From Anthoceros angustus (lineage: Eukaryota > Plantae > Anthocerotophyta), in contig MU008162.1 in the NCBI GenBank assembly GCA_010909165.1, positions 806,001-870,000 on the forward strand: a stretch of 64,000 nt of DNA. The letters are read 5' to 3'. How positions within the stretch are numbered: position 1 is the stretch's first letter; each line of letters begins with the position of its first letter. The notes beneath the pieces are model-generated. The model searched no databases, had not been told where the DNA came from, and saw nothing but the letters and a program-made list of their open reading frames with translations. Positions 2,761 to 35,762 of the stretch are shown here, piece by piece. The translations under genes and the position numbers were made by a program.

Positions 2761-3442
2761 CCAAGTGATTGCAACGATCGAATGTCACTTGGTCTTACCA
2801 TCGCCCCGCCATCGCACTGCCGCCTACATGACAAACATGCCATACACCTCTACCGCTGCTCACCTCCGACACTTGATGCCACGACCACGTCGCGCTTATT
2901 CTTCACCCCAATTCTTGGTGATCACCGCCTTTTTTTGGTCACTTGAGCCGCCTTATCCCTATCTACCGCAACTACACGCATCACACCCACTGACACGCCG
3001 CCGTGGTGCCTTGCCACCGATGTTCCATCGTCATCGCCTTTTCTCACCGCAACAACTCGTTGCCGCCCCGATCAGCCGCCTTCCCTTGCTTCTCGCACCC
3101 ACGGCGGTCACCACAATTAGCTTTCTCTCCCACATGCACCGTGATGACCCCCGCTTCACCTTCGCCGCTACTGCGGTCGATGCACTCACACCGTATTTCA
3201 GCATTGTCGCCTTCCAATGGATCGCTGAATCCTCCAGGTCTATTAGAATCCTCCTTCGTGCCCGCCAATCCTCCGTCCACACCTTTACTTCCCTTGCGCC
3301 GCCAACCCTACAGACGCCTCACACAACCCGCATATCGATAAGGCAAGTAACGGGTTTTAGACCTTCCCTTTAGTGACTCTCTTCCACGCCCACACCGTGA
3401 GTGCGCGCTTACCCGCCCCCGCCTTCTTTCCTAGCTTTTCCG

Positions 3443-3580
3443 TCAGCATTTGTGACAAAACCATTCTCCTTCCGGATCGCTTTCAGCGGTCGAAGACAAA
3501 AGACATGATGTCCTTGGTTGCACCGGTCACACAACAAAGATTAGTTCGGTCGTGATTTGACCACGTGTTCGCACGGCATC
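3443..3580 (-). other. PHD finger at the integrase C-terminus
   Basis: CEH..LLCDRCNQGHHVFCLRPLKAI(P)EGEWFCHKC-stop, read across two small indels. C4HC3 pattern with the typical PEGEWFC ending. Confidence 0.88.
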
Positions 3581-3879
3581 AACAGTGGCTTCCATGCTTG
3601 TGGTTGTATGCGTATCAAGATTCGGCAAGTGGCAGGCCGATGTCGCATGTGCTCCTTGCATCGGCGCCCATCTTGCCCTTCCAACTCGATGACCCTTGCT
3701 CACCAACGCTCACCACTCTCAAAATCAACCGTCCGTGTTTCGTCCAAAGTGCGGAAGGATGTTGAAGATACGAAATCACCCACTTGAACTTTCGGCCTTT
3801 GGCTTCCATGACCCTCCTCGTGTGAATGCATACCTCAATTGATCTGTGTGCGATGGCGGATTGTCCATCGCCATGGGTA

Positions 3880-4690
3880 TCACTCGTTGTAACAACTTGG
3901 TTTCGTAACTCGAGCAACACTCATCCACATCTTGTGTCCATCGGTTTGGAATATGTTCGCCACTATGTTGGGCAGCACAGATTCTCGCCAAACATTATGT
4001 AATAGGACTGTTGCCTGTGGCTGCCAGACGATCTCAGAGCCTGTGGCAACGTAAGGTAGCAACTCATCCCAACAATTAGGCTCGATTCCGTGCAAGATTG
4101 CGAAGTGAATCCTTGAAAGTTTGCACCGCCTTTCGCTAAACCATACGCACGAGGATGATCCGTGGCGTGCGTCGTGATCTATCAAACTCCGATCCAACAA
4201 CGCTTGGAACTCTCCTCCAATTGCTTTCCTTGATCTGTCACACCTCTCGCATGCCTTCCATATCCGCTCAAAACGCACAGAAGAAAGCTCGTCGTGAATT
4301 GGGAAGTTCGTGGAAGGAATGCCAATTCCACCCACTTGGAGAAGTGTTCTATCATGAGCATACAATGCTTGTTGCCTTGCTTGGTCAATGGTAGCTCGCA
4401 TGAGGTCAACGGACCATCGAAAGAAGGACCGAATAGGCCGAATGCAACACCACATCGTTGAACCTTGCTTTGACCGCATCACAAGCACATCTCGACACCA
4501 CTCGCTCGGCGTGAGTACATTCCGGACCAAAAATAGGCACTCTTGACATATGATGCGTCCTTTTTACAATCAAGTGCCCAAGTGTCTTGTGCACTTTACT
4601 CACTATCTGCTCCTGTTCCTCTATGGGAGGGACCATTTTACACACTCCACGATCATCACTAACAATTTGCCATCCCTCGGTATACCTCAT
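3880..4690 (-). other. Gypsy integrase (Zn-binding and core domains)
   Basis: VHKTLGHL..VSRCACDAVK (HHCC region), CELPLTKQGNKH..IEHFSKW, VTDQG, VER. Confidence 0.9.
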
Positions 4691-4949
4691 GACCTTCCGT
4701 CAGACTTTTGAAGCGGCATCTAGTCCAACTACTTGTCCTTCCTTCAATAGTGAATAGCATGCCCTCTTCCATATGTCTCGTCCCTCATTGAGTTGTTTTC
4801 TTCCTTCGACTTGTGGCCATGAGAGCCATATACATGCTTGGCATGTAACGAGCATGATCAAAATCACCGCGCACGGTCCCATCTTTGTCATCAAGTCTGG
4901 GTTCACCTAAGTCCATCCGCATTGTGATGTACTTTTGCGCCTTGCACTA

Positions 4950-6050
4950 TGTGCATATCATATTCACAGAACGCCCACCTTGCGAGCTTGCCACTCAACT
5001 TCATGTTCGTCATTAACGATTACAGCGGTGATCGATTCGAGTTGGAAGCTCTGCCGAACAAATAAATTACGAAATGTAGAATCCCACACCCCAGCCAAAC
5101 ATTCACCCTCATACGACGAATAATTGGCTTCCGCTGAATTGTTCGACTTGACACGCAATCACTCTTTCTTTTCCTTCCCGATCCACCTGCAAGTACTCCG
5201 ATTCCGTTGCACCCGGTATCTGAGTGAACGGTTTTCAAAATCAGCCGTTTGAGCATGGGCCTTTCGATTGATCCTTTAACTCCGCCAAGCATGTTCATGT
5301 TTTGCTCCCATTGCCTGTGCCCCTTTTCATCGGATCATACAATACCTTGCAAGTGCCGCATGTTCACGATGAATCGGCGATAGTTGACAAGTCCCAAGAA
5401 TGCTCTCAACGCGCTGCCCTTGGTCTTGGCATAAGATTGACCGCACCTTCGCCACGGCACGCCTGGCACAATCTTGTGGCCCAAGTATTCTATCTCCTTG
5501 TAAGCAAACTTACACTTCTTTGGATGTGCCTTCAGCCCAGAACTGGACAGTCTCTGCAGCAACGTTTCGAGGTGCTGAATGTGTTCCTCCAGACTGTCGC
5601 TAAACACCAAAATGTCATCAATGTAACACCTCACGAATGGTAATCCTTGCAACTCCAAGTCTGCCACCCTCTGAAAGTAGATGGAAGCGTTTTTCAGCCC
5701 AAAAGGCATCGTCTCCCACTCCCACAACTGTTCTTTGCCCCAGAAAGCCGTTTTACACTTGTCTTCTTCTTCGATGACGATTTGATTGAATCGAGCGGAA
5801 ATCCAACGTCAGAAATACTTGGCTTAATCGCCAAAGATTTCATCCGGGGTAGGCATGGGATATCGCTCCATAGGCGTTACCTCATTCGTGCGATAATCTC
5901 CACACATCCTTTGTCCTTCCATTCGCCGTTGCCTCTTTCTTTAGCGGAAGGACCGTGGCAGCAGATACCGTGAACTTGATTTTAATTAATCCACCGCAGA
6001 AGTTCCCTACACCGCTTATCCACAATGTCCCTCTGGGCTCAACATGCCTT
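4950..6050 (-). other. Gypsy reverse transcriptase and RNase H
   Basis: WETMPFGLKNASIYFQRVADLELQGLPFVRCYIDDILVFS..KCKFAYKEIEYLGH (5335-5727); NSAEANYSSYEGECLAGVW (4964-5158). Confidence 0.96.
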
Positions 6051-6374
6051 CTAAAACCGGCTCATTGGTAGTAGTGATGATTTTGAACTTGATGCGCTCA
6101 TAACGCCCCAGCTCTTGCCATTAACGCCAAGGTACCCGATTCTTCTCCAAAGATCTCCGGATCCTGCATTGATCCTCGATATTCAAGTCCTCACATATTT
6201 GCCATACATGAGTTGAATGCCCACTCGTGCTTTCCACTCGACGATACTTCTCCGCACTATTCGCGATTTGGGTACTTGTCCCGACGGACTGTAAGCTCTT
6301 CCCCGTCACCCATCATCTCATACACGACCTTCCTCCTATCGACTTGCATTCACCGTGGCTATTCCCACACTCAC

Positions 6375-7200
6375 CAACCATTGAACACATGTCGTCAAAT
6401 GCTTGTCCCGTTTGCATCCGAAAGCTTGACACACCGTATAGGTGCCGCCATCGTCAAAACCCATCGCTGCTCCCCGCTCTACAATCGTGGGTTCCCCATC
6501 TCCTCACCATTCATGTTCAATACCATGCCCGCACCACGGCGAAAGGCATATGACCGTGACCGACGCAGGGCCAAGCCTCTCTGGTTCTCCCACAATATGT
6601 GATAGTGTGGCAACCTATCCATCCTGCTCACTGCTATGCGATCGCTCGCCTCCTCAAGGATCCCATCCAGTTCCGCTTAGTTGGTGTGGTTAAACTGATG
6701 TGCTGAGTGTTTCCACACTAATGAATCCCGTGCTGGAGACGATGAGCATACGACCGTTTGCACCAATGATGAACTCCTCCCACCTCGACCTTTTCATAAT
6801 TTTCTCTCACATGACCCGTTTGTCAAAAGCTCCGCAAACATTCTCCAGCAAGTACCAACATGCCGGATTGCATCGCACTTCTCGAATCCGTGACTTCCCC
6901 GCACTGTTGCCTTGACCACGTCCGGCCTTGGAAAAGGTCTTGCACTCCCATCCCGCAATCCATGTCAACGGGCATCTCATTGCCTCAGAATGTGCTTTTC
7001 CCACCAGCATCACATCGTGGCTTTGGTCGGCACCCTTTATGGCTTCCACACTCGAAGCTCGGATGCATTTTTGTAGCGATAATCCCGGATTTGGCCTTTG
7101 AGTCTTCTCATCAATTTCTACACACGTATACTTCCGCACCAATCCCACATCGCAGACACACTCCACTACTAATCCTCGAACACAACTCCATGAGATGGAT
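6375..7200 (-). other. C5 DNA-cytosine methyltransferase domain embedded in Gypsy pol
   Basis: Motif I HLMELCS-ISSG (~7160-7197); motif II YTCVEID; motif IV IAGWEC(Q/K)-(D/T)-(L/F)SKAGRGQG with Cys at 6942-6944; motif VI YLLENV (6837-6854); motif VIII SYAHRL (~6735-6755); motif IX EPTIVERGAAMGF (~6455-6495); motif X GQAFD (~6393-6410). All are in canonical order. Confidence 0.85.
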
Positions 7201-7589
7201 GCCTGTCATGCACTCGCCACCGAATCACTTGGTTATCGATTTGTAACCCCAGATTTCCTATGATCGTCATTGTGGCGCTTCTTCCGGACAATTGCGGTGA
7301 TTCGCCATATTTGCATCCGTCGAATACGCTCTCTTTCCAAAGCCTTCCTCGGTGGTGGTACACTCACATCATTCGATGTCGTGCTTTCTTCGACACCTCG
7401 TGTCGTGCCGTGTCTTGTCTCTTCCCACACCTCCCCTCGAACACTCCCGCGGCACGCCGTGAACGCCAAAGATACTTGATCTTTCACCATGCCTCCTCAT
7501 GTCCGAGGAATTCGCATGTGTGAAATCTCCATCCCGCCACTTTGGCCTATAAAACGCCAGAGTGCGCCGGATCCACCCCATTGTCGTCT

Positions 7590-7850
7590 GCGTAGCATCC
7601 GCACCCAATAACACATCATAGTTTCGTGCATCGAAACCAAACAATGTACTTCCACCACACACGCATCGCTGTTCTCGGCTTATACTCTATCCGAATCGGA
7701 TCGCGAGTCATCCCCATCACTGTTCTTTGGTGCTGCAGATGTGGTGATCCGTACTCACACCCGGCTTGTCTCCATACAGCCAGTGCTTCTGCCCCTGCAA
7801 CACCGGATCGGCACGGTCTACTAACACACTCCGGTGCAAAGCCATTGACG
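7590..7850 (-). other. Gypsy aspartic protease (frameshifted)
   Basis: VLVD (Asp codon 7816-7818) followed downstream by ARNYDVLLG, the typical retropepsin C-terminal motif. Confidence 0.65.
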
Positions 7851-8199
7851 GTGACTTCTCGTCGCGATTCTTCACTAACGCTATTCCACCTTTCCCCTAG
7901 TCGGCTTTAGATGATCACCACGTGTCGACAAGCCGGACACCATGTTCAACTCGGGCTTCCTTCTTAATCCATGCCCGCATTGCTTGCTTGAACGGTTGTG
8001 TCCGGATCCCTGTGTCCCGCAAACTTACGGGGTACATCCATGGCTTTTTCCAATGAATCTCAGATTAGGAACAACCTCATCCGATGTGACGCCGTCGTCT
8101 CGGATCTGCACGAATGACTTGGGCATTCTCAAGCGATTCCTCCCCATCGGCCTTCACTTTTACACCCTTGCCGAAATCAATGCTTCCCACTTTGGTCCG

Positions 8200-9324
8200 C
8201 CTTGACCTTTCCGTCATCAACGCAAACACATCTTCGTCCGTCATAGGTTTCGCCGACGCATGAGTCCTTGTTTATGCTCACGCTCATAGCCACCGCTCTT
8301 GCACCGTGCACCTCACCAAGGCTTTCCGAGTGTAGCTCGCACCCTACCGCTTGTCCATTGCTCGGTCTCCTAGGCCCTTGGGTTTGAGTTCAGATGGGCT
8401 TGCCAAGCGGCTGTATGTCCGGTTTTACCACATGCCCCACGCCTCTTTCTCCTTTGACCCACCAACACGATGCTCACATTCATACGCCAGCGGCCCCTTG
8501 CACCGCAAAACACTTTACGGATGTCTTGAAGCTTACGCTGATGAGCCACTTGATCCTTTGATGGCGACTCGTTGAGCGTTCACCACACATGCTCGCGATA
8601 ATGTGACTTCCTGTGCTTCGCTCAATGTTCAAGTGTCGGTGTGACCTCTCACATTGTGCTCCTCGAAGCATTGGTGACATCTCCTTCATAACTCTCTTCG
8701 GCCATCTCGCGCTGCTCCAACTCATAATCCCATGTAGCATATGCGAAAGTTGGCGATCACCCTCTCTTCCTCGGCAAAGAATGTATATTTGCGCTGCCTC
8801 CTCATGGTCTTCACCTTGGTGTCTTCACCACCGCCTCAACCGTAGATATGCGGATCTTAGAGGCTCATTCGGCTTGATCACAAACTTTGACAACTCTTGG
8901 ATTTTCTCAATGGAAGATACCGGGAACATCTCACCAAACTTGACGAACATCTCGTCCACCAAATAAGTGATGACCTCGGATTCGATGAACCCGATGATCC
9001 CGGTTCTTCATCATCGACCTTGAGCCTTTCCTTGCCGCTTCATTCGCACGACATGTGTGCATCCTGCGATCTTTTCTTTGCGACACGATAGCGTGTTAAA
9101 GCTTCACCTAGAAACGCGTGCTCATCTTTCCGAGTGCCATCTCGGTGTGAACTCGACTTGTATTTGAGCACCATCTCATCAATCGCCCATCCGAACTTCT
9201 CTTCAAAGTCGAAGAGACATACTACCGTGTCTACCGTGAACACATCATTTGCTGGTTCATAATCCATCCCGGCGCCACCACGATTTTCTTCAAAGTCAAT
9301 GGATCCGATAGAGTGTGACTCCAC
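8200..9324 (-). other. Probable gag region of the DNMT-carrying Gypsy element
   Basis: Broken ORFs directly upstream of the protease in the same orientation. No diagnostic motif was recognised. Confidence 0.35.
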
Positions 9325-10569
9325 TCAAATCGACCACTTGTCCTACGGACCGAAGGAAGCGTGCCCCGGATTGTAAGCTTCCGCTGTGTCGGTGCTGTCA
9401 TTCACCCCGACCGTAATAACACCATCACTATCAATCCCTCCCCGCGAGAGACTATGTAAGGCATTCCGTCAAAGTTGGTGCCGCCTTCGGCCCGCCCGCC
9501 AACCATGCCACTTGTCAATCCTCACCCGAGACGTTGCAACTGCCGCCCAGCTCCACCGATCGGCCCACTCCCGAATGGATGCTCGCATAAACAGTGAATA
9601 ATCCAAGGTGTTTTCTCGATACCACCATGGACTTATCCGTGTCGCTTCACCGGCTTGACCGACCAGCCTCCTCTCCTCTTCCGCTCAATCTCGGCCCTCT
9701 CGACCTTCGAGTCGGTTACCTTGTGGCTTCACCAAAGATGCGGATTGTTGATGTGCAAAAATTTTTCGACTTGGGATGGTTGTCCTCACACACCATACCA
9801 AGCATCACAAGGTGCTCGAAAATGCTTGGGATCCGTCTCTCTATTGAATCGACATCAACAATCCGCCTCAATGACGGATTGTCGGACTTTGTAGCCTACA
9901 CCGCCGATCTTAATTATCGCTGACCAAGCGCCGTGATCACACCCGCACATGTCGGGAGATCTTCGCCGCCGAGCCGTAATTGCGCTTGACCGTATTCTGT
10001 TTGTATGGTCCACATAACCACGACACCATCCTATTTCCATACCCATGCCACTCATCATGCCACCACACACATAGCACACGCACACCATCACACTCAGATT
10101 CTTATCTACCTCTTTCTACCACTGCGTGCCATGACATGTACATCAATATGCTATCTTCGCTGCTAGTATAGATCTAGTAACAGTGTTTGTTGCTCATAGG
10201 AATAGCGCTGACCACGTGGTATCAAAGCTTTGACACGCTTTGCAAGTAGTACCTTCACAGTTGTCTATCCCTCAACTTCTTATAAACTTACTCAAACTGC
10301 TTCTTGTGAACTTACAATTAACAATTAATTCGTGTTGATCTAGCAAGGCTACATGGAAAGGTTGGACGTGGATCTGTTAAACAGGGAGGATGATACTATG
10401 TGTGGAGTGCCAAAACCGATGTCCGCACTCCTGGCGACTGGTTTTAGGCTTGTTTTGTTTTTTTGGGTCGTTATTGTTAAGGGGGATAGGAAGGAGTTAG
10501 CCAATAAGGCCGTTTTGGCCAGATTGCACTTAGAGTGCAATCCTAACCCCGGTCCGTTAGCGAGCGGTC

Positions 10570-10750
10570 AGGAGTGGTCCGGTCGAGGTCCGGCGGGTGG
10601 TCCGGTCGAGGTCCGGCCAGTGGTCCGGCCGAGTGGTCCGAGGTCAGGCGGAGTGGTCCGGTCGAGGTCCGGCCGGAGTGGTCCGGTCGGTGGGCGGAGT
10701 GGTCCGGCCGAGGTCCGAAGGAGTGGTCCGTCCGGCGAGGTCCGGAGTGG
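10570..10750. repeat. Tandem array of ~20-25-bp GAGTGGTCCGG(T/C)CGAGGTCCG units
   Basis: About 8 imperfect units are directly visible. Confidence 0.9.
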
Positions 10751-11139
10751 TGCGGCTTTGGCGGCGTAGTCTGGTTGGCATAGTTTGGAAAGGATCTCAC
10801 TTGGAAAGGGCGTGGGCGGTGGAAGAAGTCGGGTTGCAATGATGAGCTACGTCTGGCGGTTTTCGACCAGTTAGGGTACATACATAGGTGGGTTAGATTA
10901 GGATATGTGGGGGTATATAGGAAGGCTGGCGTCCAAGACGGAGACTATCCGGGTACCATCTTCGCTCCGTGTGCTCTTGCCTTCGTGCTCGAGGCGAGTG
11001 AGTTCCTCGTCACCGTGCGATTAATTGGTGGTAGAGGGGTGTGTTTAGAGCTCGTGACGAGCTCCGCCAACACGCTTGATGGGTGCGAGGGTCGGACTGA
11101 GCTCGGAGGTGCTCGCGGGTGATTGTGCGAGACTAACAG

Positions 11140-19223: not shown

Positions 19224-19529
19224 TTGGGCAGTAATCCAGTGGTAATGGGGCTCATGTTGGCGCTCTCGGCCTTGGCCTTGGCACAGGCTTTTCTGAACAT
19301 CGGGAGGGTGCTGAATCCGGGGCCGGGCAAGCGGAAGTTTCCTCCAGGCCCCACAGGATGGCCCGTGCAGGGAAGCCTGGTGTCCGTTTTCATGAATTCC
19401 GCAAAGCTTCCCCACGCTGCGTTGCGCGATCTGTCCAGGCAGTACGGGCCCATCCTGTGCTTCCTTCCGGCCGGGGACGGGTCTGGGCGTGTGGCACATG
19501 CTCGCCAACGGATCGATCACGGGGGCTAG
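19224..19529 (+). pseudogene. Cytochrome P450 5' fragment (membrane anchor + PPGP hinge)
   Basis: Hydrophobic N-terminus, then RKFPPGPTGWPVQGSL..LPHAALRDLSRQYGPIL. No downstream P450 exons were found. Confidence 0.85.
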
Positions 19530-19695
19530 TTCCCCTTGGCCTGGTGCATTCCAAAGGGTTGTTCTCCTTCGTCTCGGGATGGATGGAAAATTTCATCTCC
19601 TTTTCTTACATAAGGTCTCTTTTTTTTTAAAATAGCATATGGGGATAGAAGATGTATCTCCTCATTTTCGAACTCATTGTGGTTTTGATGGCATG
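19490..19695. repeat. 206-bp direct repeat flanking the tandem retrotransposon (left copy; right copy at 30360-30565)
   Basis: Near-identical sequence from TGTGGCACATGCTCGCC to TTTTGATGGCATG on both sides. Degenerate similarity extends back to ~19427 and ~30308. Confidence 0.95.
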
Positions 19696-20264
19696 AGTAA
19701 CACCCCCTTTTCAGCGAGGTGGGGCAGTCACGCAGTTAGCGACAAAAACATCACCAGACACCAGCACTAGGCCTCCAAGTAGCCCGCCGTCCTTCCACGG
19801 ACGACTCATGATCCGCTGCTATTTATTCCAGCAGAGTCAACAAGAATACATGAGAGATCGAGAGAGCTCCCCATCTTTGCCTAAGCTAGGAGCTTAGCTC
19901 TCTCCCTCGATCTCCTCCTCAGCTCTCCTCTAGCACGCTCACACTCCCTCCCAAAGCCTCTAGGCACCAAAGTCCTATCCTCACAAGAGTGTAGCTCCCA
20001 AGTGCTAGGATCCTTCTAGACATGCTCACACTCTAGGCTCCCAAGGCCTTTAGGCTCCAAAGTCCTATCCTCAAGAGTGTAGCTCCCATGCTAGGATCAC
20101 AAGATATCTCTAGGGCTAGCCTCATCTCCTTATATAGGAGGCTTACATCATTTCCAAAGTAACGCTAAAAGCGGACTTTCTTCCTTAAGCCCTAAGCTAA
20201 GTCTTACCACCACTACTTACAACTTACTAACTAGATCCATGCATGCTTCTCAAAGGCTGTTACT
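19696..20264 (-). repeat. LTR 1 (3' LTR), termini AGTAACA...TGTTACT, two internal ~83-bp units
   Basis: AGTAAC at 19696 and GTTACT ending at 20264, followed by the PPT complement TCTCCCC. Confidence 0.93.
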
Positions 20265-23200
20265 TCTCCCCATCAGGAAAAGAATCATCTCTGATAGCCA
20301 ACGATCGAGAGATCATCCAGATCCTTTCAATATCCTCTAACGTTACCCAAAGCTGGATCGAGATCCCACGCAACTTTACCATATCGTGGTACGATTCCAC
20401 GCTTTGTAGGCACGCTACTCTCGCAAGGAATTCCTCAATTTCCAGTCCTTGATTATCGCACGAGAACACGTACTTCTTCTTGTCCATGTCTTCTTTCTTT
20501 TTCGCACAAATGGTTTCGAGTGATACATGAAACACATTGTGTGCAAAAATCCATTCAGCACCGTAACTTGTAAGCCACTTCTCCAATGCGCTTCAAGACT
20601 ACAAATGGACCACCATATCTTGGCCTTAACTTAAGAGTTAATCCTTGAGGTAATGGGAAATGCTTCAATTTCACCCATACTTTATCCCCAACGTTGAAGA
20701 CTTTCTCTCCTGCCTATCGATATTTCTTCCGACGTGCTTGAGCCTTGGCTAAAATTCCTTTGGCAATCTCATGCCTAGCCTTCAAGCTCAATGAATCGGC
20801 GTGGATCTCTAGTGGTAGTATCGAAAACTTCAGCATTTAGCATGGATACCACGTCCGGTGAATTTCCTCCCATCTCAAAGGACTACATCCAAGAGTATGC
20901 GTGTTGTTATAACAAAATTGCATCGTCTAGATGATCACCCAATCCCTCGATCAATCACATAATGCCTTAAGTATTCTTCTTGGATTCGGTTGACTCGTCG
21001 GTTGAGCCATCGATCCGGATGGAAAAGTGCTCATACATAATTCCACATTCAAGCATTTCATCAAAATGCTGCCAAAATTCTCCTGTGAACCTTGGATCCC
21101 CTCACTCACAATGCATAGGTAAGCCATGGTACTTGTATATATACTTCTTAAACAAGTGGCTACCTCAGCCACTCGCTTCTTTGTAGGGATGAAATGTGCT
21201 TGTTTGGTGAATCTATCCACCACCATCATGATAGACAACCATTCGGTGGCAAAGGCATGATAAAATCCATAGAGATACTCTTCCAAGGTCCACTTGGAAT
21301 AGGGAGTGTAAACCTCTTGGTTTAGCTTGCTCCACCTTATCTTCGACAAACAGACATGCCTTGACATAATCCACGTATCTTTACATTCCGGCCGATAAAG
21401 CAGCTTCCTTAGCTTCTCATAAGTGGGGTCAATTCCGTGACACACTTGGCTCATCATGACATTCGAAGCAATTTGCTCTTCAACTCAAGAATTTGGGATC
21501 ACAATCCTCCTCTTGTATATCAACAAACCATCCCTCAATTTGAACTTGCTTCCTTTCGCTCTATTCCATTAATCCATCGAACATGGATCCTGCAGATATG
21601 CTTCCTTGATCTTGTGAGTGTCCATAGGTTCAACCAGATTGCCATTGCCTTTACTTCCGACTCTTTTGCGACTCGGTCATCCAACCTTATTCTCTTTTCC
21701 GGTTTATACTTGAGAGTCACATCATACATAGCTAGGAAATCTTGCCATCTAGCTTGTCTTGCATTCAACTTCAATGGTTAGAAGTATGTTGTCGATATTA
21801 TCGATAGAGCACAAAAGATCCCAAGAGATAGTGTCTCCATACCTTCGGACAATGAATGATGCGTCATTTCCTTCTCATAGGTGGGATACTTCAACTCATA
21901 AGGATGCAATTTCCTTGACTCAAAAGCTATCTTATGGTCTTGCATCAACACTCCACCTATGGCCACGTCGAGGCATCAGACACTTCCACATCCTTCTTGG
22001 GATCATACATTCCTAAAACCGAGTTGTACTCAATTCATCTTCAAGTATTCAAATCTTGACATTCATCCCACTTCCAAGCTTTCGTCATCTTTAAGAGGTC
22101 GTTATGGGGCTGCTATCTTAGCAAACATCTGTACAAATCTCCACATACGTAAGCCAAACCCATAAAACTGCGAACCTCATGAATGTTCCTAGGAGGTTGC
22201 CAATCTTGAATGGCCCTCACCTTATCGGATCCATTCGATGCCATCAGAGACAATAAAGCCTAAGAAAAGCTACCTCTTGACGGTCACACTTCTTAATTGC
22301 CAAGAACAAAGAATTCTCTCTTAGCTTGTAACACTTCTCTTAAGTGTTCGCATGTTCCTCCAAGGTATGGCTAAAGATCAAAATGTCATCCGGATAGATT
22401 ACAACACACTTGTCCACGGATCTATGAATATAGTATTCATAAGTGTATAAAATGTATGCATTAGTAAGTCCAAATGGCATGACCGAAATTCAAAAGCCCC
22501 ATACCGGTCCTACATGTCGCTTTTGTACTCATGTCCCTCTGCGATTCGATCGATAGTACCCGCCATCGATCTAGCTTGGTGAAATACTTGGCACCCTTCA
22601 ACCTCAAACATATCATCCATTCTTGGCAAAGGATATGCATTCTTCGTAATTTGATTCGAGCTCGTAATCTAAACACATCCTTAGTCCTCCATTCTTCTTG
22701 CGTAAACAATACGGCGCACCAAAGGAGACTTAGAGACTCGATATATCCCTTTGCCAGTTGGATAGTTGTCGCTTGAGTTCCGTAGCTCATCCTGCGACAA
22801 TCTATATGGTGCTCGACGGGCGTACTCCCCTCAATTCAATCTCATGATCTACTACTCTATGAGGCGGTAAAGGTGGCAATTCATCGCATCAAATCCTTAA
22901 AGTCATCCAAGACACTGTAATTCCTTGGGATGTCTTTCTCTTGAGGATTCTTCCTCAAGACCATCCTCTAATCCAGGAGCATAACTAGATAAAGCTCCTT
23001 CTTCATCTTATGTCGCTTGAGCTCTCTTTTGAAATCAAGCATCGAGCACATCTCAAGCTTGACTAAGATTAGCACAAACCACCTTGTGCTTTCCATTCTT
23101 CAATATCTCAATGGTGCGGGACTTCACATCTACACGCACTTCATTGGATTTCATCCACTCTAGACCCAAGATAACATCATGGTCATCCATGTCTACAACT

Positions 23201-24625
23201 GAAACTCATGTATCCTTCCCACGCTTCTATTTGCAGCTTTACTCCATGCAATTCACCCAAGAAAAGCGAGTTCCTTTAGCTTGCTTGATTCCATATGGCG
23301 GAAGTACTAGCCCATTCTAGCCCAAGCTCTTTTTATGCGAGTTATAAAATTGTGGGTGGCGAGTCCAACAATAACTCTACTTCTAAGCCATTCATCTTTC
23401 CACATATGTACATAAGGGCTCCACCTTCCCTCAAAATAGTGTCATCCTTGACACTAGATGACTCACCACATCTTCACCACAACATGTGGCCCGCGTCATT
23501 TGGGCTCTGCGAAGCTCACGAATCCTAAGTCCGGAGCTTGAGGATTGGCGGCTATCACATTCTTGGGAATTCCCGCATGCGGACAATCTTTCGCAAAGTG
23601 TCCTTGCTCCCCTCAAGCACCGCACCAAATTGAGGGCTCGTCCTTTGGCTTCCACGGCCACGACCTCTATTGGCTCCTCTTCCTCTTCCTCGCCTCACCA
23701 ACATTATCATTTGTTCCAATATGCCCGGTGTTGGTGGCTCTTCCTCTACCTCGTGATCTTCCTTGAAAAGATCTTGGATACCTTCCTCGAAAGACCGGTG
23801 CTTCCTCGGCACGACTTGTGTCGTATCGCATCTGCCATAATAGCCTCTCGCAGAGTTTGAGGTTTTGTCATCGATTCTATCCAGAGCCCACCTTTGAGTC
23901 CACTATAAAACATGGAGCTTATCCACCTCGCATATGTCAGGCATTGTAACACATGCTAAATTCACTCACATACCGCAACATTCTGTGCTTCACATTCTCT
24001 AGCATCCTTCTTGCCAGATAGATGCATTAGTTGGTGGAATTGAAGTTGCGGTGCATCTTTGAATTACGCCGGTGGAAATAGTTTCCACTCTATTACCTGT
24101 TCAATACTCGAACATAAGTTCTCCACCAAGTAAGGCGTACCCTTCTAAGAAGTTAACGATGTGATCTAGATACTCTTCTGCGGAATCCTGCGGTAGTATC
24201 CTTCCAATGAGAAAAACCACGAATTGATTTTCTCCACATCTCGTTCACCCTTATACCTATCTGGGGGCTGAACGCTTAGCCTCAACTTCTTGGGTCTCCT
24301 TGCTCTACTCCTTTCTGGGCCAGGCTCCAATTCGTCCTGTTCATCATCCTTCTCTGCTTCATCGAGCTTCCTTTTTCCTTGTACTTGTTGCTCTAGAGCT
24401 TCCATTCTCCTCAAAAGATTTTGAAGCTCCTCTTGCGGCATGGTGACGGTCTTGACCCAGGTATCTGCCGTTCGATTAGTGGCTCCATCGAGGCTCATCC
24501 ACTGGTCTCCACCATAGGAGCCTTCTCTTTCTTCGCCGTATTCTCTCTGCTGCACGGCTCTTGAGATCGGCCATCTCCATAGCGTCCTAGCTAAAAGATG
24601 CTTCAACCTTGAGCTCGATACCACA

Positions 24626-25264
24626 AGTAACACCCCTTTTCAGCGAGGTGGGGCACGCGATTAGCGACAAAAACATCACGGACACCGACTAGGCCTCCAA
24701 GTAGCCGCCGTCCTTCCACGGACGACTCGATCACATCTGCGCTATTTATTCCGAAGAGTCAACAAGAATACATGAGAGATCGGAGAGCTCCCCATCTTTG
24801 CCTAAGCTAGGAGCTTAGCTCTCTCCCTCGATCTCCTCCTCAACAGCCTCCTCTAGCACGCTCACTCTAGGCTCCAAAGCCTCTAGGCACCAAAGTCCTA
24901 TCCTCACAAGAGTGTAGCTCCCAAGTGCTAGGATCCTTCTAGACATGCTCACTCTAGGCTCCCAAGGCCTCTAGGCTCCAAAGTCCTATCCTCAAAGTGT
25001 AGCTCCCCATGCTAGGATCCTCATGCTCACACTCTAGGCTCCCAAGGCCTTTAGGCTCCAAAGTCCTATCCTCAAGAGTGTAGCTCCCCATGCTAGGATC
25101 ACAAGATATCTCTAGGGCTAGCCTCATCTCCTTATATAGGGAGGCTTACATCATTTCAAAGCGCTAAGCGGACTTTCTTCCTTAAGCCCTAAGCTAAGTC
25201 TTACCACCACTACTTACAACTTACTAACTAGATCCATGCATGCTTCTCATGCAAGGCTGTTACT
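24626..25264 (-). repeat. LTR 2 (shared middle LTR), three internal units
   Basis: PBS complement GCTCGATACCA at 24613-24623, a 2-nt spacer, then AGTAAC at 24626. GTTACT ends at 25264 and is followed by TTCCCC. Confidence 0.93.
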
Positions 25265-28200
25265 TTCCCCATCGAAAAGAATCACATCCTCGTGATAGCC
25301 AACGATCGAGAGATCATCCAGATCCTTTACGAATATCCTCTAACGTTACCCAAAGCTGGATCGAGATCCCACGCAACTTTACCATATCGTACGATTCCAC
25401 GTTTTGTAGCACGCTACTCTCGCAAGGAATTCCTCAATTTCCGATCCTTGATTATCTTTGCACGAGAACACTGTACTTCTTCTTGTCCATGTCTTCTTTC
25501 TCTTTGCACCACAAATGGTTTCGAGTGATACATGAAACACATTGTGTGCAAAAATCCATTCAGTATTTGTAAGCCACTTCTCCAATGCGCTTCAAGACTA
25601 CAAATGGACCACCATATCTTGGCCTTAACTTAAGAGTTAATCCTTGAGGTAATGGGAAATGCTTCAATTTCACCCATACTTTATCCCCAATGTTGAAGAG
25701 TTTCTCCTGCTCGGCATATTTCTTCGGCGTGCTTGAGCCTTGGCTAAAATTCCTTTGGCAATCTCATGCCTAGCCTTCAATTCAATGAATCGGCGTGGAT
25801 CTCTAGTGGTAGTATCGAAAACTTCAGCATTTAGCATGGATACCACGTCCGGTCTGAATTCCTCCCATCTCAAAAGGACTACATCCAAGAGAGTATGCGG
25901 TGTTGTTATAACAAAATTGCATCGATGATGATCCAATCCCTCGATCAATCGCACATAATGCCTTAAGTATTCTTCTTGGATTCGGTTGACTCGCTCAGTT
26001 GAGCCATCAGTATCCGGGTGGAAAGCTGTGCTCATACATAATTCCACATTCAAGCATTTCATCAAATGCTGCCAAAATTCTGCTGTGAACCTTGGATCCC
26101 TGTCACTCACAATTTGCATAGGTAAGCCATGGTACTTGTATATATACTTCTTAAATAAGCTGGCTACCTCAGAAGCTGTCACTCGCTTCTTTGTAGGGAT
26201 GAAATGTGCTTGTTTGCTGAATCTATCCACCTCATGATCAACAACCATTCGGGTGGCAAAGGCATGATAAAATCCATAGAGATACTCTTCCAAGGTCCAC
26301 TTGGAATAGGTAGCAAACCTCTTGGTTTAGCTTGCTCCACCTTATCTTCTTAAGACATGCCTTGACATAATCCACGTATCTTGATACATTCCGGCCAAGA
26401 AAAAGCCTTCCTTAGCTTCTCATAAGTGGGGTCAATTCCACGGTGACACACTTGGCACATCATGACATTCAGCAAGCAATTTGCTCTTCAACTCAAGAAT
26501 TTGGGATCACAATCCTCCTCTTGTATATCAACAAACCATCCCTCAATTTGAACTTGCTTCCTTTCGCTCTATTCCATTAATCCATCGAACATCCGGATCC
26601 TAAGATATGCTTCCTTGATCTGCTTTTGAGTGTCCATAGGTTCAACCAGATTGCCATTGCCTTTACTTCCGACTCTTTTTGCTCAATCCGCAACCTTATT
26701 CTCTTTTCCAGGTTTATACTTGAGAGTCACATCATACATAGCTAGGAAATCTTGCCATCTAGCTTGTCTTGCATTCAACTTCAACTGGTTAGAGAAGTAT
26801 GTTGTGCTGATATTATCAGTATAGAGCACAAAAGATCTGCCCAAGAGATAGTGTCTCCATACCTTCAGACAATGAATGACAGCAGTCATTTCCTTCTCAT
26901 AGGTGGGATACTTCAACTCATACGGATGCAATTTCCTTGACTCAAAAGCTATCGGCTTATGGTCTTGCATCAACACTCCACCTATGGCCACGTCGAGGCA
27001 TCAGACACTTCCACATCCTTCTTGGGATCATACATTCCTAAAACCGAGTTGTACTCAATTTCATCTTCAAGTATTCAAATGCTGCTTGACATTCAGCATC
27101 CCACTTCCAAGCTTTCGTCATCTTTAAGAGGTCAGTTATGGGGGCTGCTATCTTAGCAAACATCTGTACAAATCTCCTGTACACGTAAGCCAAACCCATA
27201 AAACTGCGAACCTCATGAATGTTCCTAGGAGGTTGCCAATCTTGAATGGCCCTCACCTTATCAGGATCCATTCTGATGCCATCAGCAGAGACAATAAAGC
27301 CTAAGAAAGCTACCTCTGTCTTGGACACACACTTAATTGCCAAGAACAAAGAATTCTCTCTTAGCTTGTAACACTTCTCTTAAGTGTTCAGCATGTTCCT
27401 CCAAGGTATGGCTAAAGATCAATATGTCATCCAGATATATTACAACACACTTGTCTACCAGATCTATGAATATAGTATTCATAAGTGTAAAATGTGGCGT
27501 GCATTAGTAAGTCCAAATGGCATGACCGAAATTCAAAAGCCCCATACGGTCCTACAATTTTGTACTCATGTCCCTCTGCGATTCGATCGATAGTACCCGC
27601 CATCGATCTAGCTTGGTGAAATACTTGGCACCCTTCAACCTCAAACATATCATCCATTCTTGGCAAAGGATATGCATTCTTCGTAATTTGATTCGAGCTC
27701 GTAATCTAAACACATCCTTAGTCCTCCATTCTTCTTGCGTAAACAATACACGCGCAAAGGAGACTTAGAGACTCGATATATCCCTTTGCCAGTTGGATAG
27801 TTGTGTCGAGTTCCCGTAGCTCATCCTGCGACAATCTATATGGTGCTCTCGACGAGGCGTACTCCACAGCCTCAATTCAATCTCATGATCTACTACTCTA
27901 TGAGGCGGTAAAGGTGGCAATTCATCGTGCATCAAATCCTTAAAGTCATCCAAGACACTGTAATTCCTTGGGATGTCTTTCTCTTGATTCTTCCTCAAGA
28001 CCATCCTCTAATCCACGGAGCATAACTAGATAAAGCTCCTTCTTCTCTTATGTCACCTTGAGCTCTCTTTTGAAATCAAGCATCGAGCACATCTCAAGCT
28101 TACTAAGATTAGCACAAACCACCTTGTGCTTTCCATTCTTCAATATCTCAATGGTGCGGGACTTCACATCTACACGCACTTCATTGGATTTCATCCACTC

Positions 28201-29650
28201 TAGACCCAAGATAACATCATGGTCATCCATGTCTACAATGTGAAACTCATGTATCCTTCCCACGCTTCTATTTGCAGCTTTACTCCATGCAATTCACCCA
28301 AGAAAAGCGAGTTCCTTTAGCTTGCTTGATTCCATATGGCGGAAGTACTAGCCCATTCTAGCCCAAGCTCTTTCGCCTTGAGTTATAAAATTGTGGGTGG
28401 CGAGTCCAACAATAACTCTACTTCTAAGCCATTCATCTTTCCACATATGTACATAAGGGCTCCACCTTCCTCAAAATAGTGTCATCCTTGACACTAGATG
28501 ACTCACCACATCTTCACCACAACATGTGGCCATGGCGTCATTTGGGCTCTGCGGCTCAGAATCCTAAGTCCGGAGCTTGAGGATTGGCTATCACATTCTT
28601 GGGAATTCCCGACATGCGGACAATCTTTCAAAATGTCCTTGCTCCCACAAGCACGCACAAATTGAGGGCTGTCGTCCTTTGGCTTCCACGACCTCTATTG
28701 GCTCCTCTTCCTCTTCCTCTCCTCCAACATTATCATTTGTTCCAATATGCCCTGTTGGTGGCTCTTCCTCTCCTCGTGATCTTCCTTGAAAAGATCTTGG
28801 ATACCTTCCTCGAAAGACACCGGTGCTTCCTCGGCACGACTTGTGTCGGTATCGCATCCGCAGCCATAATAGCCTCTCGCGAGTTTGAGGTTTGTCATCG
28901 ATTCTATCCAGGCCCACCTTTGAGTCCACTATAAAACCTGGAGCTTATCCACCTCACATATCGTGGCATTGTAACACACATGCTAAATTCACTCACATCT
29001 TCGCAACATTCGTATGCTTCACATTCTCTAGCATCCTTCTTGCCAAGATAGATGCATTAGTTGGTGGAATTGAAGTTGCGGTGCATCTTTGAATTACGCC
29101 GGTGGAAATAGTTTCCACTCTATTACCTGTTCAATACTCGAACATAAGTTCTCCACCAAGTAAGAGCGTACCCTTCTAAGAAGTTAACGATGTGATCTAG
29201 ATACTCTTCCTGCGGAATCCTGCGACAGTATCCTTCCAATGAAAAACCACGAATTGATTTTCTCCACATCTCGTTCACCCTTATACCTATCTGGGACTTA
29301 GCCTCAACTTCTTGGGTCTCCTTGCTCTACTCCTTTCTGGGCCAGCTCCAATTCGTCTGTTCATCATCCTTCTCTTCATCGAGCTTCCTTTTCCTTGTAC
29401 TTGTTGCTCTAGAGCTTCCATTCTCCTCAAAAGATTTTGAAGCTCCTCTTGCGGCATGGTGACGGTCTTGAGCCCAGAGGTATCTGCCTCTGCCGTTCTA
29501 GGAGTTAGTGGCTCCATCTGAGGCTCATCCACTGTGGTCTCCACCATAGGAGCCTTCTCTTTCTTTCGCCGTATTCTCTCTGCTCTGCCTGGCTCTCTAG
29601 GATCGGCCATCTCCAGCTAGCGTCCTAGCTAAAAGATGCTTCAACCTTGA

Positions 29651-29662
29651 GCTCTGATACCA
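29651..29662 (-). other. Primer-binding site for initiator tRNA-Met (TGGTATCAGAGC)
   Basis: Plus strand GCTCTGATACCA, 2 nt from the LTR edge. Confidence 0.93.
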
Positions 29663-29664
29663 CA

Positions 29665-30309
29665 AGTAACACCCCTTTTCGTGGTGGGGCGATCACGCGA
29701 TTAGCGACAAAACATCACAGACACCGACTAGGCCTCCAAGTAGCCCGTCCTTCCACGGACGACTCATGATCGCCACATTTGCTATTTATTCCAAAGAGTC
29801 AACAAGAATACATGAGAGATCGGAGAGCTCCCCATCTTTGCCTAAGCTAGGAGCTTAGCTCTCTCCCTCGATCTCCTCCTCAGCCTCTCCTCTAGCACGC
29901 TCACACTCTAGGCTCCCAAGCCTCTAGGCACCAAAGTCCTATCCTCACAAGAGTGTAGCTCCCAAGTGCTAGGATCCTTCTAGACATGCTCACACTCTAG
30001 GCTCCCAAGGCCTTTGGGCTCCAAAGTCCTATCCTCAAAAGTGTAGCTCCCAAGTGCTAGGATCCTTCTAGACATGCTCACTCTAGGCTCCCAAGGCCTT
30101 TAGGCTCCAAAGTCCTATCCTCAAGAGTGTAGCTCCCCATGCTAGGATCACAAGATATCTCTAGGGCTAGCCTCATCTCCTTATTTATATAGGGAGGCTT
30201 ACATCATTTTCAAAATGCGCTAAGCGACTTTCTTCCTTAAGCCCTAAGCTAAGTCTTACCACCACTACTTACAACTTACTAACGGATCCAGGCTGCATGC
30301 TTCTCATGC
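29665..30309 (-). repeat. LTR 3 (5' LTR), outer ~12 bp missing
   Basis: AGTAAC at 29665. Ends ...CTTCTCATGC, without the AAGGCTGTTACT seen in LTR2. Confidence 0.9.
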
Positions 30310-30719
30310 GATCTCCGGCGTCTGGGCCCATCGCTTCCTTAGGCGGGGCAGTGCAGGCATGTGGCACATGCTCGCCAACGGATCGATCACGGGGGCTAGT
30401 TCCCCTTGGCCTGGTGCATTCCAAAGGGTTGTTCTCCTTCGTCTCGGGATGGATGGAAAATTTCATCTCCTTTTCTTACATAAAGTCTCTTTTTTTTTAA
30501 AATAGCATATGGGGATAGAAGATGTATCTCCTCATTTTCGAACTCATTGTGGTTTTGATGGCATGGATCTTTTTTTAATATTTTATTTGGTTCGTCTTTT
30601 ACCTCATGGTTGGATGGTGGTGTGATGAGTAATGATGAATTGTTATTATTTCTTCGATGCTTTCCTTAGTTGGAGCTTACTTCTTTCATTGAGATGTTGA
30701 GCAACATTTGTCAAGGAGA

Positions 30720-30998: not shown

Positions 30999-31428
30999 TC
31001 ATCTTGTACGGATACTCACTGACTCGGAGAGGGTTGTGCCTGCACCAGCTGAATGGATTCCCTTGATTCGGCCGGATGCATGAGGAGCTAGGGCACTTTG
31101 GAGTGAAGTGGACCTACAGCCTGCTGACCCCTCATTTTCATTGGCAGGGGATGTACTCGCAGGTCAGGGACTTCGTAGCCCGGTGTGCAAGGTGTGATCA
31201 AGTAAGGGCCACCTTCTCCAGCCATGGTACATCAAAGCAGTTGCACCCGTTGCCCATCCAGGGACTGTTCTATAGATGGTCGTGTGACTTGGCAGGGAAG
31301 CTCCCACGTACACAAAGAGGCAACGTTTACATTATGGTGATGGTCGAGCATTTTAGCAAATGGTTGGAACTGGTGGCCTTGCCAGACAAAACCAGCAGGA
31401 GCACTAGCCAGGCATTTGGACTGGGCTG
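30995..31428 (+). mobile_element. Gypsy integrase fragment related to the DNMT-carrying element
   Basis: HEELGHFGVKWTYSLL..CARCDQVRATF..LFYRWSCDLAGKLPRTQRGNVYIMVMVEHFSKW. It shares the EHFSKW signature with the integrase at 3880-4690. Confidence 0.9.
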
Positions 31429-34013: not shown

Positions 34014-35762
34014 TCATTTCTTCAAGTCTAAGGTGTACAGAATGTTGCCGAACGCGTCATGATACACAACGTGGCACACATTCGGTGCCATAGACACGGA
34101 GATGAAGCCTTGGCCATCAAAAGCGAAGGCAACCCCATTGACCTCGTTAGGTCCATCGATCCCTGCATAAGCCTTGGAGCCGCCTCCTGAGGTGATGAAA
34201 TGGACAGGGCTGCAGCAAACAGAACCCAGTGGCTTGTTAAATCCTCCAACGGATGGATTTCAGAGAGGCAGTTGAACGGAGATGAGAGCTGGAATTTGGA
34301 TTCAGATGAACTTCAATTTCCCTGACCTGTCTACTCGTTTGATGTGCTGAAGCGTGTGGTCGTGGCCATTGATGTACGCGTCAACTCTGTTTGCCTGCTC
34401 GTCGTGACCCGTTGATTAGTTCGACCATGAACTGTAAATTCTTCAAGCTTGAAATGAAAGAAGAGAGGGCAACTTGATGAAGGCAAACAAATGATGAGGA
34501 GGATGTGTGACGTCACCTCCAGGATGGGAAGCACTTGATCTATGAGCTCTCGGGTGTCCCCGTGCACCCCCACGCTACGAATTGGGTGATGCCCAAAGAC
34601 GAATTTCCATGCAGCCGAAGAGCTTTTCAGGGCTCGGTCCAAATCCTGTTCACAACGGACATCACGTCAAGAGCTTGTCCTAAATGGTGGCATTGCAAAG
34701 CCTCAGACGAAGCACACCCAGGCACACATGTTGGAATACTTAAAAACCTGCAGTTGCTTCTTCAATTGTTGGTCTCGAGGCAACAACCCTCTCCAATCGT
34801 ACGTGACATTGGGTGCAGGCGCCCAGTTCTCGTCCACGAAAGGGTTGGTGTCAATGAAAAACATCTCAACAACGGTGTCGCACACACCTGTAATTGAAGA
34901 AGCCAGCTATCAGAGACTGGTCTGGCAATGACCAGGAGCGTAGGGGAGGGTCTCTCACCCTCAGCAGTGGCCGGATGAGCACACAGAGAGCGCTGCAGCT
35001 GATACTCTCGCTTGCAAAACCAGCGTGGATCACGCTTCACCAGACCTTCGTCCAGCTGGGCAAGGGTGTCTCCGCGGTAGTCATGGTTTCCTAAAACTGC
35101 AACCCACGCAGAATCAACACAAAGAGGCAACAACACCACACATGCACTTGGCAGTGCATAGTCCTGAAGCTTGGATGACCACGGATTCTGGCCAAGATGC
35201 ACTCGCAATCCAAAAACCGGGTTTGCATCATACATGCAGGACGCACTTGTGTACCACGTGGTTTGCAAGCTGGGTGCCGTGTAAATGTTCTTGAAAGACT
35301 CATCAAACTGGGGGTCATCCACTCCCTGAAGTCCTGACGGGTAGAAATTGTCCCCAACAGAGATGACAAATTCGCTGTCCAGCTCCTGCCCAACCCTGCC
35401 CATCTGAAACAATGTCCCCACCCAGCCCAGTACAAGTACATGTGAGACACTGCCTTTGCTCTACACCAGCCCATCCTCAAATGACACCATACTGCACCAG
35501 CATCTGCCCACCCCCAGGCTAACAGACGTACACATACCTGCTTTGCAACCTCAGTCTGGTTATATTCTCCTTGCCGTCCCCAGTCACCAAACACCAGAAA
35601 GTTCAGAGGATACAGAGGAGCATGCTCTAACTGCGAGATGCTGCTGCCGTCTGCTGCAGCAGCCAGCCAGGATGCCACACACACCAACCCCAAGCCCGCC
35701 AGCAGCGCCACCATCAACGTCAGGGCCCACACCCATCTCCACGGGCTCTGCGACAGCCGCAC
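34014..35762 (-). CDS. Purple acid phosphatase, low-MW PAP3/8/17-like (copy 1; multi-exon, start approximate)
   Basis: All five metal-binding blocks: GDWG, GDNFY, GNHDY, FGHH, GHDH. Ends ILYTLDLKK-stop at 34014-34016. Confidence 0.92.

Follow-up and report, generated by a model that had tools for sequence, protein, structure and literature searches.

Does a retrotransposon in a land plant carry its own DNA methyltransferase (DNMT), and how is such an element related to those already described? The question is raised by a locus in a contig assigned to the hornwort Anthoceros angustus, within a 64-kb stretch of DNA that was analysed at its full length and is called the window here. Transposon-borne DNA methyltransferases invert the usual view of methylation as a host weapon against transposons. 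The original prediction, made from the letters alone, placed a C5 methyltransferase inside a Gypsy-type pol, between protease and reverse transcriptase (RT). It cited a 2018 survey for retrotransposon-borne DNMTs with de novo CG methylation activity in charophyte algae and dinoflagellates. The survey does report such elements in both groups, but the charophyte is Klebsormidium only, and de novo CG activity was demonstrated only for SymbioDIRS-Dnmt3 of dinoflagellates (PMC5890265).

Identification of a methyltransferase within a decayed retrotransposon

A three-frame translation of 5200-9400 on the minus strand was used to read the parts of the element (Table 1). With a probability of nearly nine in ten, positions 3400-9300 of the minus strand represent a decayed Ty3/Gypsy-type retrotransposon copy, in the pol of which the protease is followed by a C5 cytosine methyltransferase of DNMT3 type and then by RT, RNase H, integrase and a PHD finger. 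The element keeps the Ty3/Gypsy pol order of protease, RT, RNase H and integrase, with the DNMT placed after the protease. Matches to relatives were found along its length. The gag of L002 matched 8732-8986 (tblastn, E 2.7e-6) with one stop within the match, and the L002 protease ORF, itself slightly below the Pfam cut-off for Asp_protease_2 (E 1.2e-4), matched 7465-7632 (E 7.7e-8). The protease active-site region reads VLVDRAD at 7807-7827, compared with VLIDSGA in relatives, and the C-terminal protease block NYDVLLGADA lies at 7594-7623 on the minus strand. The RT is 60% identical to that of L001.

Chromoviruses carry a chromodomain in the post-integrase position, where the window element has a PHD finger. 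The PHD piece of L001 matched 3457-3693 of the window (tblastn, E 1.4e-13), and the PHD finger of L001 (774-1076, minus strand) was detected by Pfam at E 4.9e-14. The presence of a PHD finger after the integrase in both copies points to a family trait, in which a histone reader is paired with a DNA-methylation writer.

Table 1. Parts of the element and motifs of its methyltransferase domain, by position in the window
Feature	Position	Strand	Basis
Gag remnant, broken	8400-9324 (outer limits approximate)	minus	ORF pieces; tblastn with L002 gag
Aspartic protease remnant	7465-7896	minus	tblastn with L002 protease ORF
C5 cytosine methyltransferase domain, putatively DNMT3-type, pseudogenised	6385-7214	minus	motifs, tblastn, phmmer, tree
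Motif I, LMELCSRISSG	7162-7194	minus	translation
Motif II, YTCVEID	7110-7130	minus	translation
Motif IV, GWECK	6939-6953 (Cys 6942-6944)	minus	translation
Motif VI, LLENV	6837-6851	minus	translation
Motif VIII, SYAHRL	6736-6753	minus	translation
Target-recognition region	6536-6619	minus	translation
Motif IX, EPTIVERGAAMGF	6456-6494	minus	translation
Motif X, GQAFD	6394-6408	minus	translation
Linker, DNMT to RT	5980-6384	minus	P0052 ORF aligns to 5800-6291, E 1.6e-9
Reverse transcriptase	5338-5979 (YIDD 5614-5625)	minus	PF00078, E 1.8e-21, 77 bits
RNase H remnant	4909-5149	minus	tblastn with L001 RT-RNase H pieces, E 1e-6 and 4e-9
Integrase core remnant	3769-4478	minus	PF00665 rve E 0.0024, below cut-off; L001 integrase tblastn E 7e-15
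PHD finger, integrase C-terminus	3412-3693	minus	PF00628 E 2e-4 on 3412-3540

The DNMT motifs I, II, IV, VI, VIII, IX and X are collinear and in canonical order, spanning ~830 bases from 7194 down to 6394. This order from I to X is unrearranged, unlike that of DRM. All seven motifs had been claimed in the original prediction, and each was recovered on the minus strand, in the stated place or close to it. The accompanying repair of motif IV to CQDLS by two indels was wrong; it is unnecessary because the in-frame ECKTFSKAGRGQG can be aligned with ECKGLSMAGRGKG of L004 without a gap.

Database searches were carried out with the window pieces and with their relatives. None of 20 window pieces matched PF00145 (Pfam), and a PDB sequence search with the main DNMT piece (6807-7166) gave no match, even at E 10. 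An exhaustive phmmer comparison of this 119-residue open piece with 1.84 billion representative proteins returned exactly two matches, P0001 (E 2e-4, 41% identity) and P0002 (E 2.8e-4, 50% identity). The DNA_methylase profile that the original prediction led one to expect was thus found in the relatives and in no window piece: P0001, P0002 and P0003 scored 32.0, 27.1 and 39.5 bits (E 6e-10 for P0003), above the PF00145 gathering cut-off of 22 bits. When pieces of the relatives were aligned to the window by tblastn, motifs IV-VI matched at E 2e-11 and the part running from the target-recognition region through motif IX at E 1e-5. The proposed protease-DNMT-RT arrangement within a Gypsy-type pol was therefore borne out by motifs, phmmer and tblastn.

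A peptide with neither a Pfam nor a PDB match could owe its motifs to chance, or could be a fragment of a host DNMT nested in this copy alone. Both are hardly credible. Chance is contradicted by the phmmer relatives that pass PF00145, by the collinear tblastn matches and by placement in the tree described below, and a nested fragment by the same architecture and in-frame fusions at several independent loci.

The domain itself is heavily damaged. At least five frame changes (path 1>2>1>0>2>1) and at least three in-frame stops (at 6807-6809, after the motif VIII block and after the target-recognition block) were counted, together with two internal deletions of ~11 and ~7 residues relative to relatives. 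Motif I is degenerate (LCSRISSG) in the window and intact (LFSGIG) in relatives, which have ENI or ENV in motif VI where the window has LLENV. The degenerate motif I and the protease active site, DRA, are further signs of decay. With stops and frame changes from gag to PHD finger, the window copy is dead. Part of the frameshifts may be assembly errors that inflate the count, but the stops, the deletions and the 35-50% identity to relatives are beyond what assembly error could explain. Since the copy is broken throughout, it cannot methylate anything, and methylation of its own cDNA or insertion site, as had been suggested, is impossible for it.

No second DNMT was found elsewhere in the window, and no DNMT relative aligned outside the element. 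A WWPCQ string at 31371 on the plus strand was dismissed as chance, with no DNMT relative aligning there. Neither LTRs nor other terminal repeats of the window copy were detected with seeds of 14 and 11 or by word-7 blastn of the flanks. Direct or inverted repeats flanking the copy in a DIRS-like A-coding-B-A-B arrangement were likewise not found; the copy may be too decayed or truncated. GC-rich, low-complexity and internally repetitive stretches, mutually dissimilar, lie on either side of the element (2320-2850 and 10350-10880). The CpG observed/expected ratio was 1.0 over the dead element (3400-9400), 0.70 over the whole window and 0.61 in the relatives' contigs; TpG and CpA were nonetheless enriched over the element.

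Architecture and constraint in related copies

The position of the methyltransferase was examined in the relatives. In both L002 and L004, gag is followed on the same strand by protease, DNMT, RT, RNase H and integrase. A single ORF of L002 (1743-2801) fuses the protease active site in frame to DNMT motifs I and II, and the remainder of the L002 DNMT continues in the same frame, interrupted by point stops only. P0052 joins DNMT motifs IX-X and the N-terminal part of RT in one ORF. In this family the methyltransferase belongs integrally to pol, in frame with it, and is not a nested insertion; the nested alternative is contradicted by these two fusions and by the same layout in L002, L004, L008 and the Klebsormidium nitens contig L006. 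In the Logan contig L001, the DNMT segment (3672-5087) is inverted with respect to gag-protease and RT-integrase, while it is in sense orientation in L002, L004, L008, L006 and the window. Either the rearrangement is genuine or the contig was folded back during assembly.

Comparison of the L001 and L002 DNMT blocks gave a pN of about 0.17-0.29 and a pS of about 0.8, which is saturated. For RT and integrase of the same pair, pN was 0.18-0.20, and ~80% of synonymous sites differed, as in the DNMT. A pN like that of RT and integrase, at saturated synonymous sites, shows that the DNMT evolved under purifying selection comparable to that on the core enzymes while the family diversified.

Relationship to the Klebsormidium elements

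A profile of the C-terminal half (A6) found P0057, named by NCBI 'putative retrotransposon protein, partial [Klebsormidium nitens]', at E 6e-7. Its contig, L006 (GCA_000708835.1), contains gag-protease, DNMT and RT-RNase H, and by organism and layout matches the KnitGypsy-Dnmt3 type (PMC5890265). In pairwise comparisons, P0003 was 37% identical to the Klebsormidium-type P0055 over 176 residues (E 5e-35), and the C-terminal half of L001 was 39% identical to P0057 over 76 residues (E 7e-18). The RTs of the group to which the window copy belongs, called the Glu-Cys group after its motif IV, are 44-46% identical to the K. nitens RT, whereas their identity to the window's other Gypsy RT is only 31-38%.

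An ML tree was built in which the reference set consisted of methyltransferases from the same search, without DNMT3 reference sequences. In it the retro-element DNMTs form one clade (99/100), separate from the prokaryote- and virus-like methyltransferases. The window piece is placed inside the Glu-Cys group (89/89), and its branch is very long, as a pseudogene's would be. The Klebsormidium-type group comes from JGI metagenomes and one Logan run, and its single measured contig, L005, has 66% GC; the RT of L007 is 80% identical to that of K. nitens. The third group, P0048/L008 and P0049, has the gag-protease-DNMT layout of the others.

Two contigs from this search carry further genes. L007 (14282-18385), a Klebsormidium-like metagenome contig that carries a Gypsy-DNMT3 copy, also has a TIR-domain gene and a Roc-LRR gene. 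P0010 (ENA metagenome ERZ1426856), a 317-residue GWPC-type C5 methyltransferase, is among the nearest non-retroelement relatives; its contig also has a TFIIB-like gene and possibly belongs to a large DNA virus.

The DNMT and RT comparisons agree, which points to one fusion older than the split of the branches and argues against convergent capture. Independent capture of a DNMT, convergent with the Klebsormidium elements, has some precedent: the K. nitens case was treated in 2018 as a lineage-specific acquisition, and retrotransposons have captured DNMT3 more than once (PMC5890265). We consider it very improbable here, given the identical insertion point between protease and RT, the single DNMT clade at 99/100, RTs that are mutually closest too, and idiosyncratic blocks common to both (GW-x-CQG, AHRLR-x-WTN, SYAF, EEPT-x-ER-x-AMGF and LLGQA-x-D-x-N). 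Sequence comparison shows that both the DNMT and the RT of the family are homologous to those of the K. nitens KnitGypsy-Dnmt3 elements.

In both kinds of element, a DNMT3-type domain without motif rearrangement sits between the protease and the RT of a Gypsy pol, and the DNMT is under purifying selection, with saturated synonymous sites (PMC5890265). They differ in host, a charophyte alga for KnitGypsy-Dnmt3 and probably a hornwort for the window element; in motif IV, which has Pro-Cys in KnitGypsy-Dnmt3 and Glu-Cys in the window's branch; and in motif VI, with EHV in Klebsormidium-type copies and ENV or ENI in the window's branch. DIRS-like repeats were described for KnitGypsy-Dnmt3 (PMC5890265), whereas none is detectable at the window copy.

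Structural classification of the domain

The domain was classified from AF2 models of two relatives, P0003 (residues 66-253, pLDDT 79) and P0049 of the third group (pLDDT 75). The Rossmann methyltransferase fold, whose absence would have spoken against the original prediction, was found in these models of the relatives. Foldseek searches with both models gave DNMT3A, DNMT3B or DNMT3C catalytic domains for all of the best 50 PDB matches listed, with best E values of 1e-10 (P0003) and 5e-11 (P0049). VIA-align, which is independent of Foldseek, ranked DNMT3B (Z 13.1) and DNMT3A (Z 13.0) first among 48,161 chains, at 22-26% identity; M.MpeI, a prophage methyltransferase and EhMeth followed at Z 11.9, so that the DNMT3 margin is only ~1 Z.

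Sequence-based searches gave a different picture. The profile of the N-terminal half matched only M.HhaI and M.HaeIII in the PDB (E about 1e-3) and did not match DNMT3A. ESM Atlas features confirmed PF00145 and indicated viral and bacterial clusters as readily as eukaryotic ones. The profile of the C-terminal half matched only designed ankyrin proteins in the PDB, and these hits were discarded as spurious. DNMT3 enzymes have a short target-recognition region and an AHR-x-R..W-x-N motif VIII, and the same features are present in the retro-DNMTs here. Host DNMT3 enzymes (human DNMT3A/3B/3C and moss DNMT3) are the closest solved folds and share the motif order I to X. They differ in that the retro-DNMT has no PWWP or ADD domain and sits in a retrotransposon polyprotein, and in motif IV, which is SPCN in host DNMT3 and GWECQG in the window's branch. 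In a published ML phylogeny the K. nitens elements fall within a divergent clade of DNMT3 (PMC5890265). Since the sequence profile matches only bacterial enzymes, the DNMT3 label derives from the structure ranking and this published phylogeny; on the relatives' models and the K. nitens placement, DNMT3-type would be the best label for the domain.

A variant catalytic loop

C5 methyltransferases normally have Glu-Asn-Val in motif VI. Klebsormidium-type copies (P0044-P0047, P0053, P0055-P0058, L005 and L006) have EHV in motif VI and Pro-Cys in motif IV, and the window's branch shows the reverse pattern, ENV or ENI with Glu-Cys.

The replacement of Pro-Cys by Glu-Cys noted in the original prediction is real and recurs in P0001-P0004. 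The catalytic Cys of motif IV is present in the window and in these four proteins, whereas the Pro-Cys dipeptide is absent, with Glu in place of Pro. All five copies of the branch that were compared (window, L001, L002, L004 and P0003) have GWEC(Q/K), while motif IV is GWPCQG in Klebsormidium-type copies and WWPCQG in the third group. L001 encodes this Glu by GAA and the other branch copies by GAG, and the adjacent Gly and Cys codons differ synonymously. Variation of the Glu codon amid synonymous changes shows that Glu is kept at the protein level and is not damage. Glu-Cys is thus a conserved trait of the window's branch that is maintained by selection.

Methylation activity has never been demonstrated for the Gypsy-DNMT3 type, and KnitGypsy-Dnmt3, of the Pro-Cys type, showed none in a yeast assay (PMC5890265). 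This negative result, and the replacement of Pro in every branch copy while the Klebsormidium-type and third groups retain it, raise the possibility that the DNMT of the Glu-Cys branch is no longer catalytic and that it recruits or deflects host methyltransferases in the manner of DNMT3L, as an adaptor or a DNA binder. We think this rather unlikely. The relatives keep the catalytic Cys, motif I (LFSGIG), ENV or ENI, both Arg residues of the motif VIII pair, and motifs IX and X; the constraint on the DNMT equals that on RT; and the authors of the yeast assay regarded its outcome as inconclusive (PMC5890265).

Genomic surroundings and host

Besides the element, the window contains other repeats. 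Repeat families spaced at 5.0 kb occupy 19486-30565 in three registers (~19.8, 24.8 and 29.9 kb), many at 97-100% identity; they look like the tandem LTR-internal-LTR-internal-LTR arrangement of a young element, with an integrase ORF at 25670-26293. Direct repeats at 34516-35739 and 43637-44782, ~9.1 kb apart and 76-87% identical, probably represent the two LTRs of a different, older retrotransposon. A single tRNA gene lies at 37812-37883 on the minus strand (Rfam RF00005, 70.8 bits). No recognisable host gene was found in the 64-kb window by an Rfam scan and Pfam searches on ten long ORFs; the former returned the one tRNA and the latter transposon integrase only. One sequencing run contained 5% of the window's words, in diverged RT and protease/gag pieces of other copies, and nothing on the DNMT. 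Two ORFs of the window, looked up by exact match, had no entry in public assemblies.

A window without a host gene, a closest named relative from a soil alga and Klebsormidium-like copies in JGI metagenomes might together indicate algal contamination, or a recent horizontal arrival, and not a resident land-plant element. Such an origin is highly unlikely. The window groups with the Glu-Cys branch, at ~50% GC, and not with the Klebsormidium-type branch (66% GC in L005, the one contig measured); the copy is old and decayed and lies among other decayed transposable elements; and a plant-type TOM20 gene adjoins the element in the relative L004. The host is probably a hornwort.

In a literature search that covered sources outside subscription journals, no report of Gypsy-DNMT3 in hornworts or land plants was found; the search turned up only the 2018 paper and a 2026 preprint in which that paper is cited. 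Physcomitrella, Selaginella and angiosperms were among the plants surveyed in 2018, but no hornwort was (PMC5890265), and later papers take from the survey no more than 'streptophytes (Gypsy-DNMT3)'. The family goes unmentioned in the papers on the Anthoceros genome and chromatin; they name orthologues of MET1, CMT and DRM and do not mention DNMT3, so that Gypsy-DNMT3 elements might be the only DNMT3-type genes of hornworts.

Discussion

Retrotransposon-borne C5 methyltransferases under selection are also known from dinoflagellates, as SymbioDIRS-Dnmt3 and SymbioLINE-Dnmt, which belong to other retrotransposon classes (DIRS and LINE) and represent separate acquisitions (PMC5890265). EpiLTRs combine methyltransferases for adenine and for cytosine with a chromodomain (bioRxiv 10.64898/2026.05.21.726589). 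They share with the window element the combination of a DNA-methylation writer and a chromatin-reader domain in an LTR element, but their DNMT is sister to DNMT4 and is accompanied by a DAM domain and a chromodomain, where the window element has a PHD finger. The elements described here thus belong to a kind already known, to which they add a conserved catalytic-loop variant and a further host lineage, the host being probably a hornwort.

In live copies, the DNMT domain may be released from Pol or act within it, and would methylate the new cDNA of the element or the neighbourhood of its insertion. Targeting would come from the PHD finger, as a reader of histone tails, and the resulting methylation state would favour persistence of the element. 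The idea that retrotransposon DNMTs promote persistence was proposed in general by de Mendoza et al. 2018 (PMC5890265).

The window copy by itself is only one more dead example. The sole earlier streptophyte record was one alga, taken as a local acquisition; if a homologous family is present in a land plant, the fusion would be old or mobile between hosts. The evidence gathered here is the equal constraint on DNMT and RT, the conserved non-canonical catalytic loop and the PHD reader. We tentatively suggest, as possible rather than probable, that Gypsy-DNMT3 is an old streptophyte lineage that reached or persisted in land plants and is not a peculiarity of Klebsormidium, that it comprises the three diverged branches seen here, and that the selected Glu-Cys may mean a change in chemistry or in substrate use, or a role other than catalysis. 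The natural Pro-Cys and Glu-Cys variants would provide a means to test what such enzymes do, and hornworts, in which vegetative tissue has almost no CHH methylation (PMC10952607), would be a good system for such tests.
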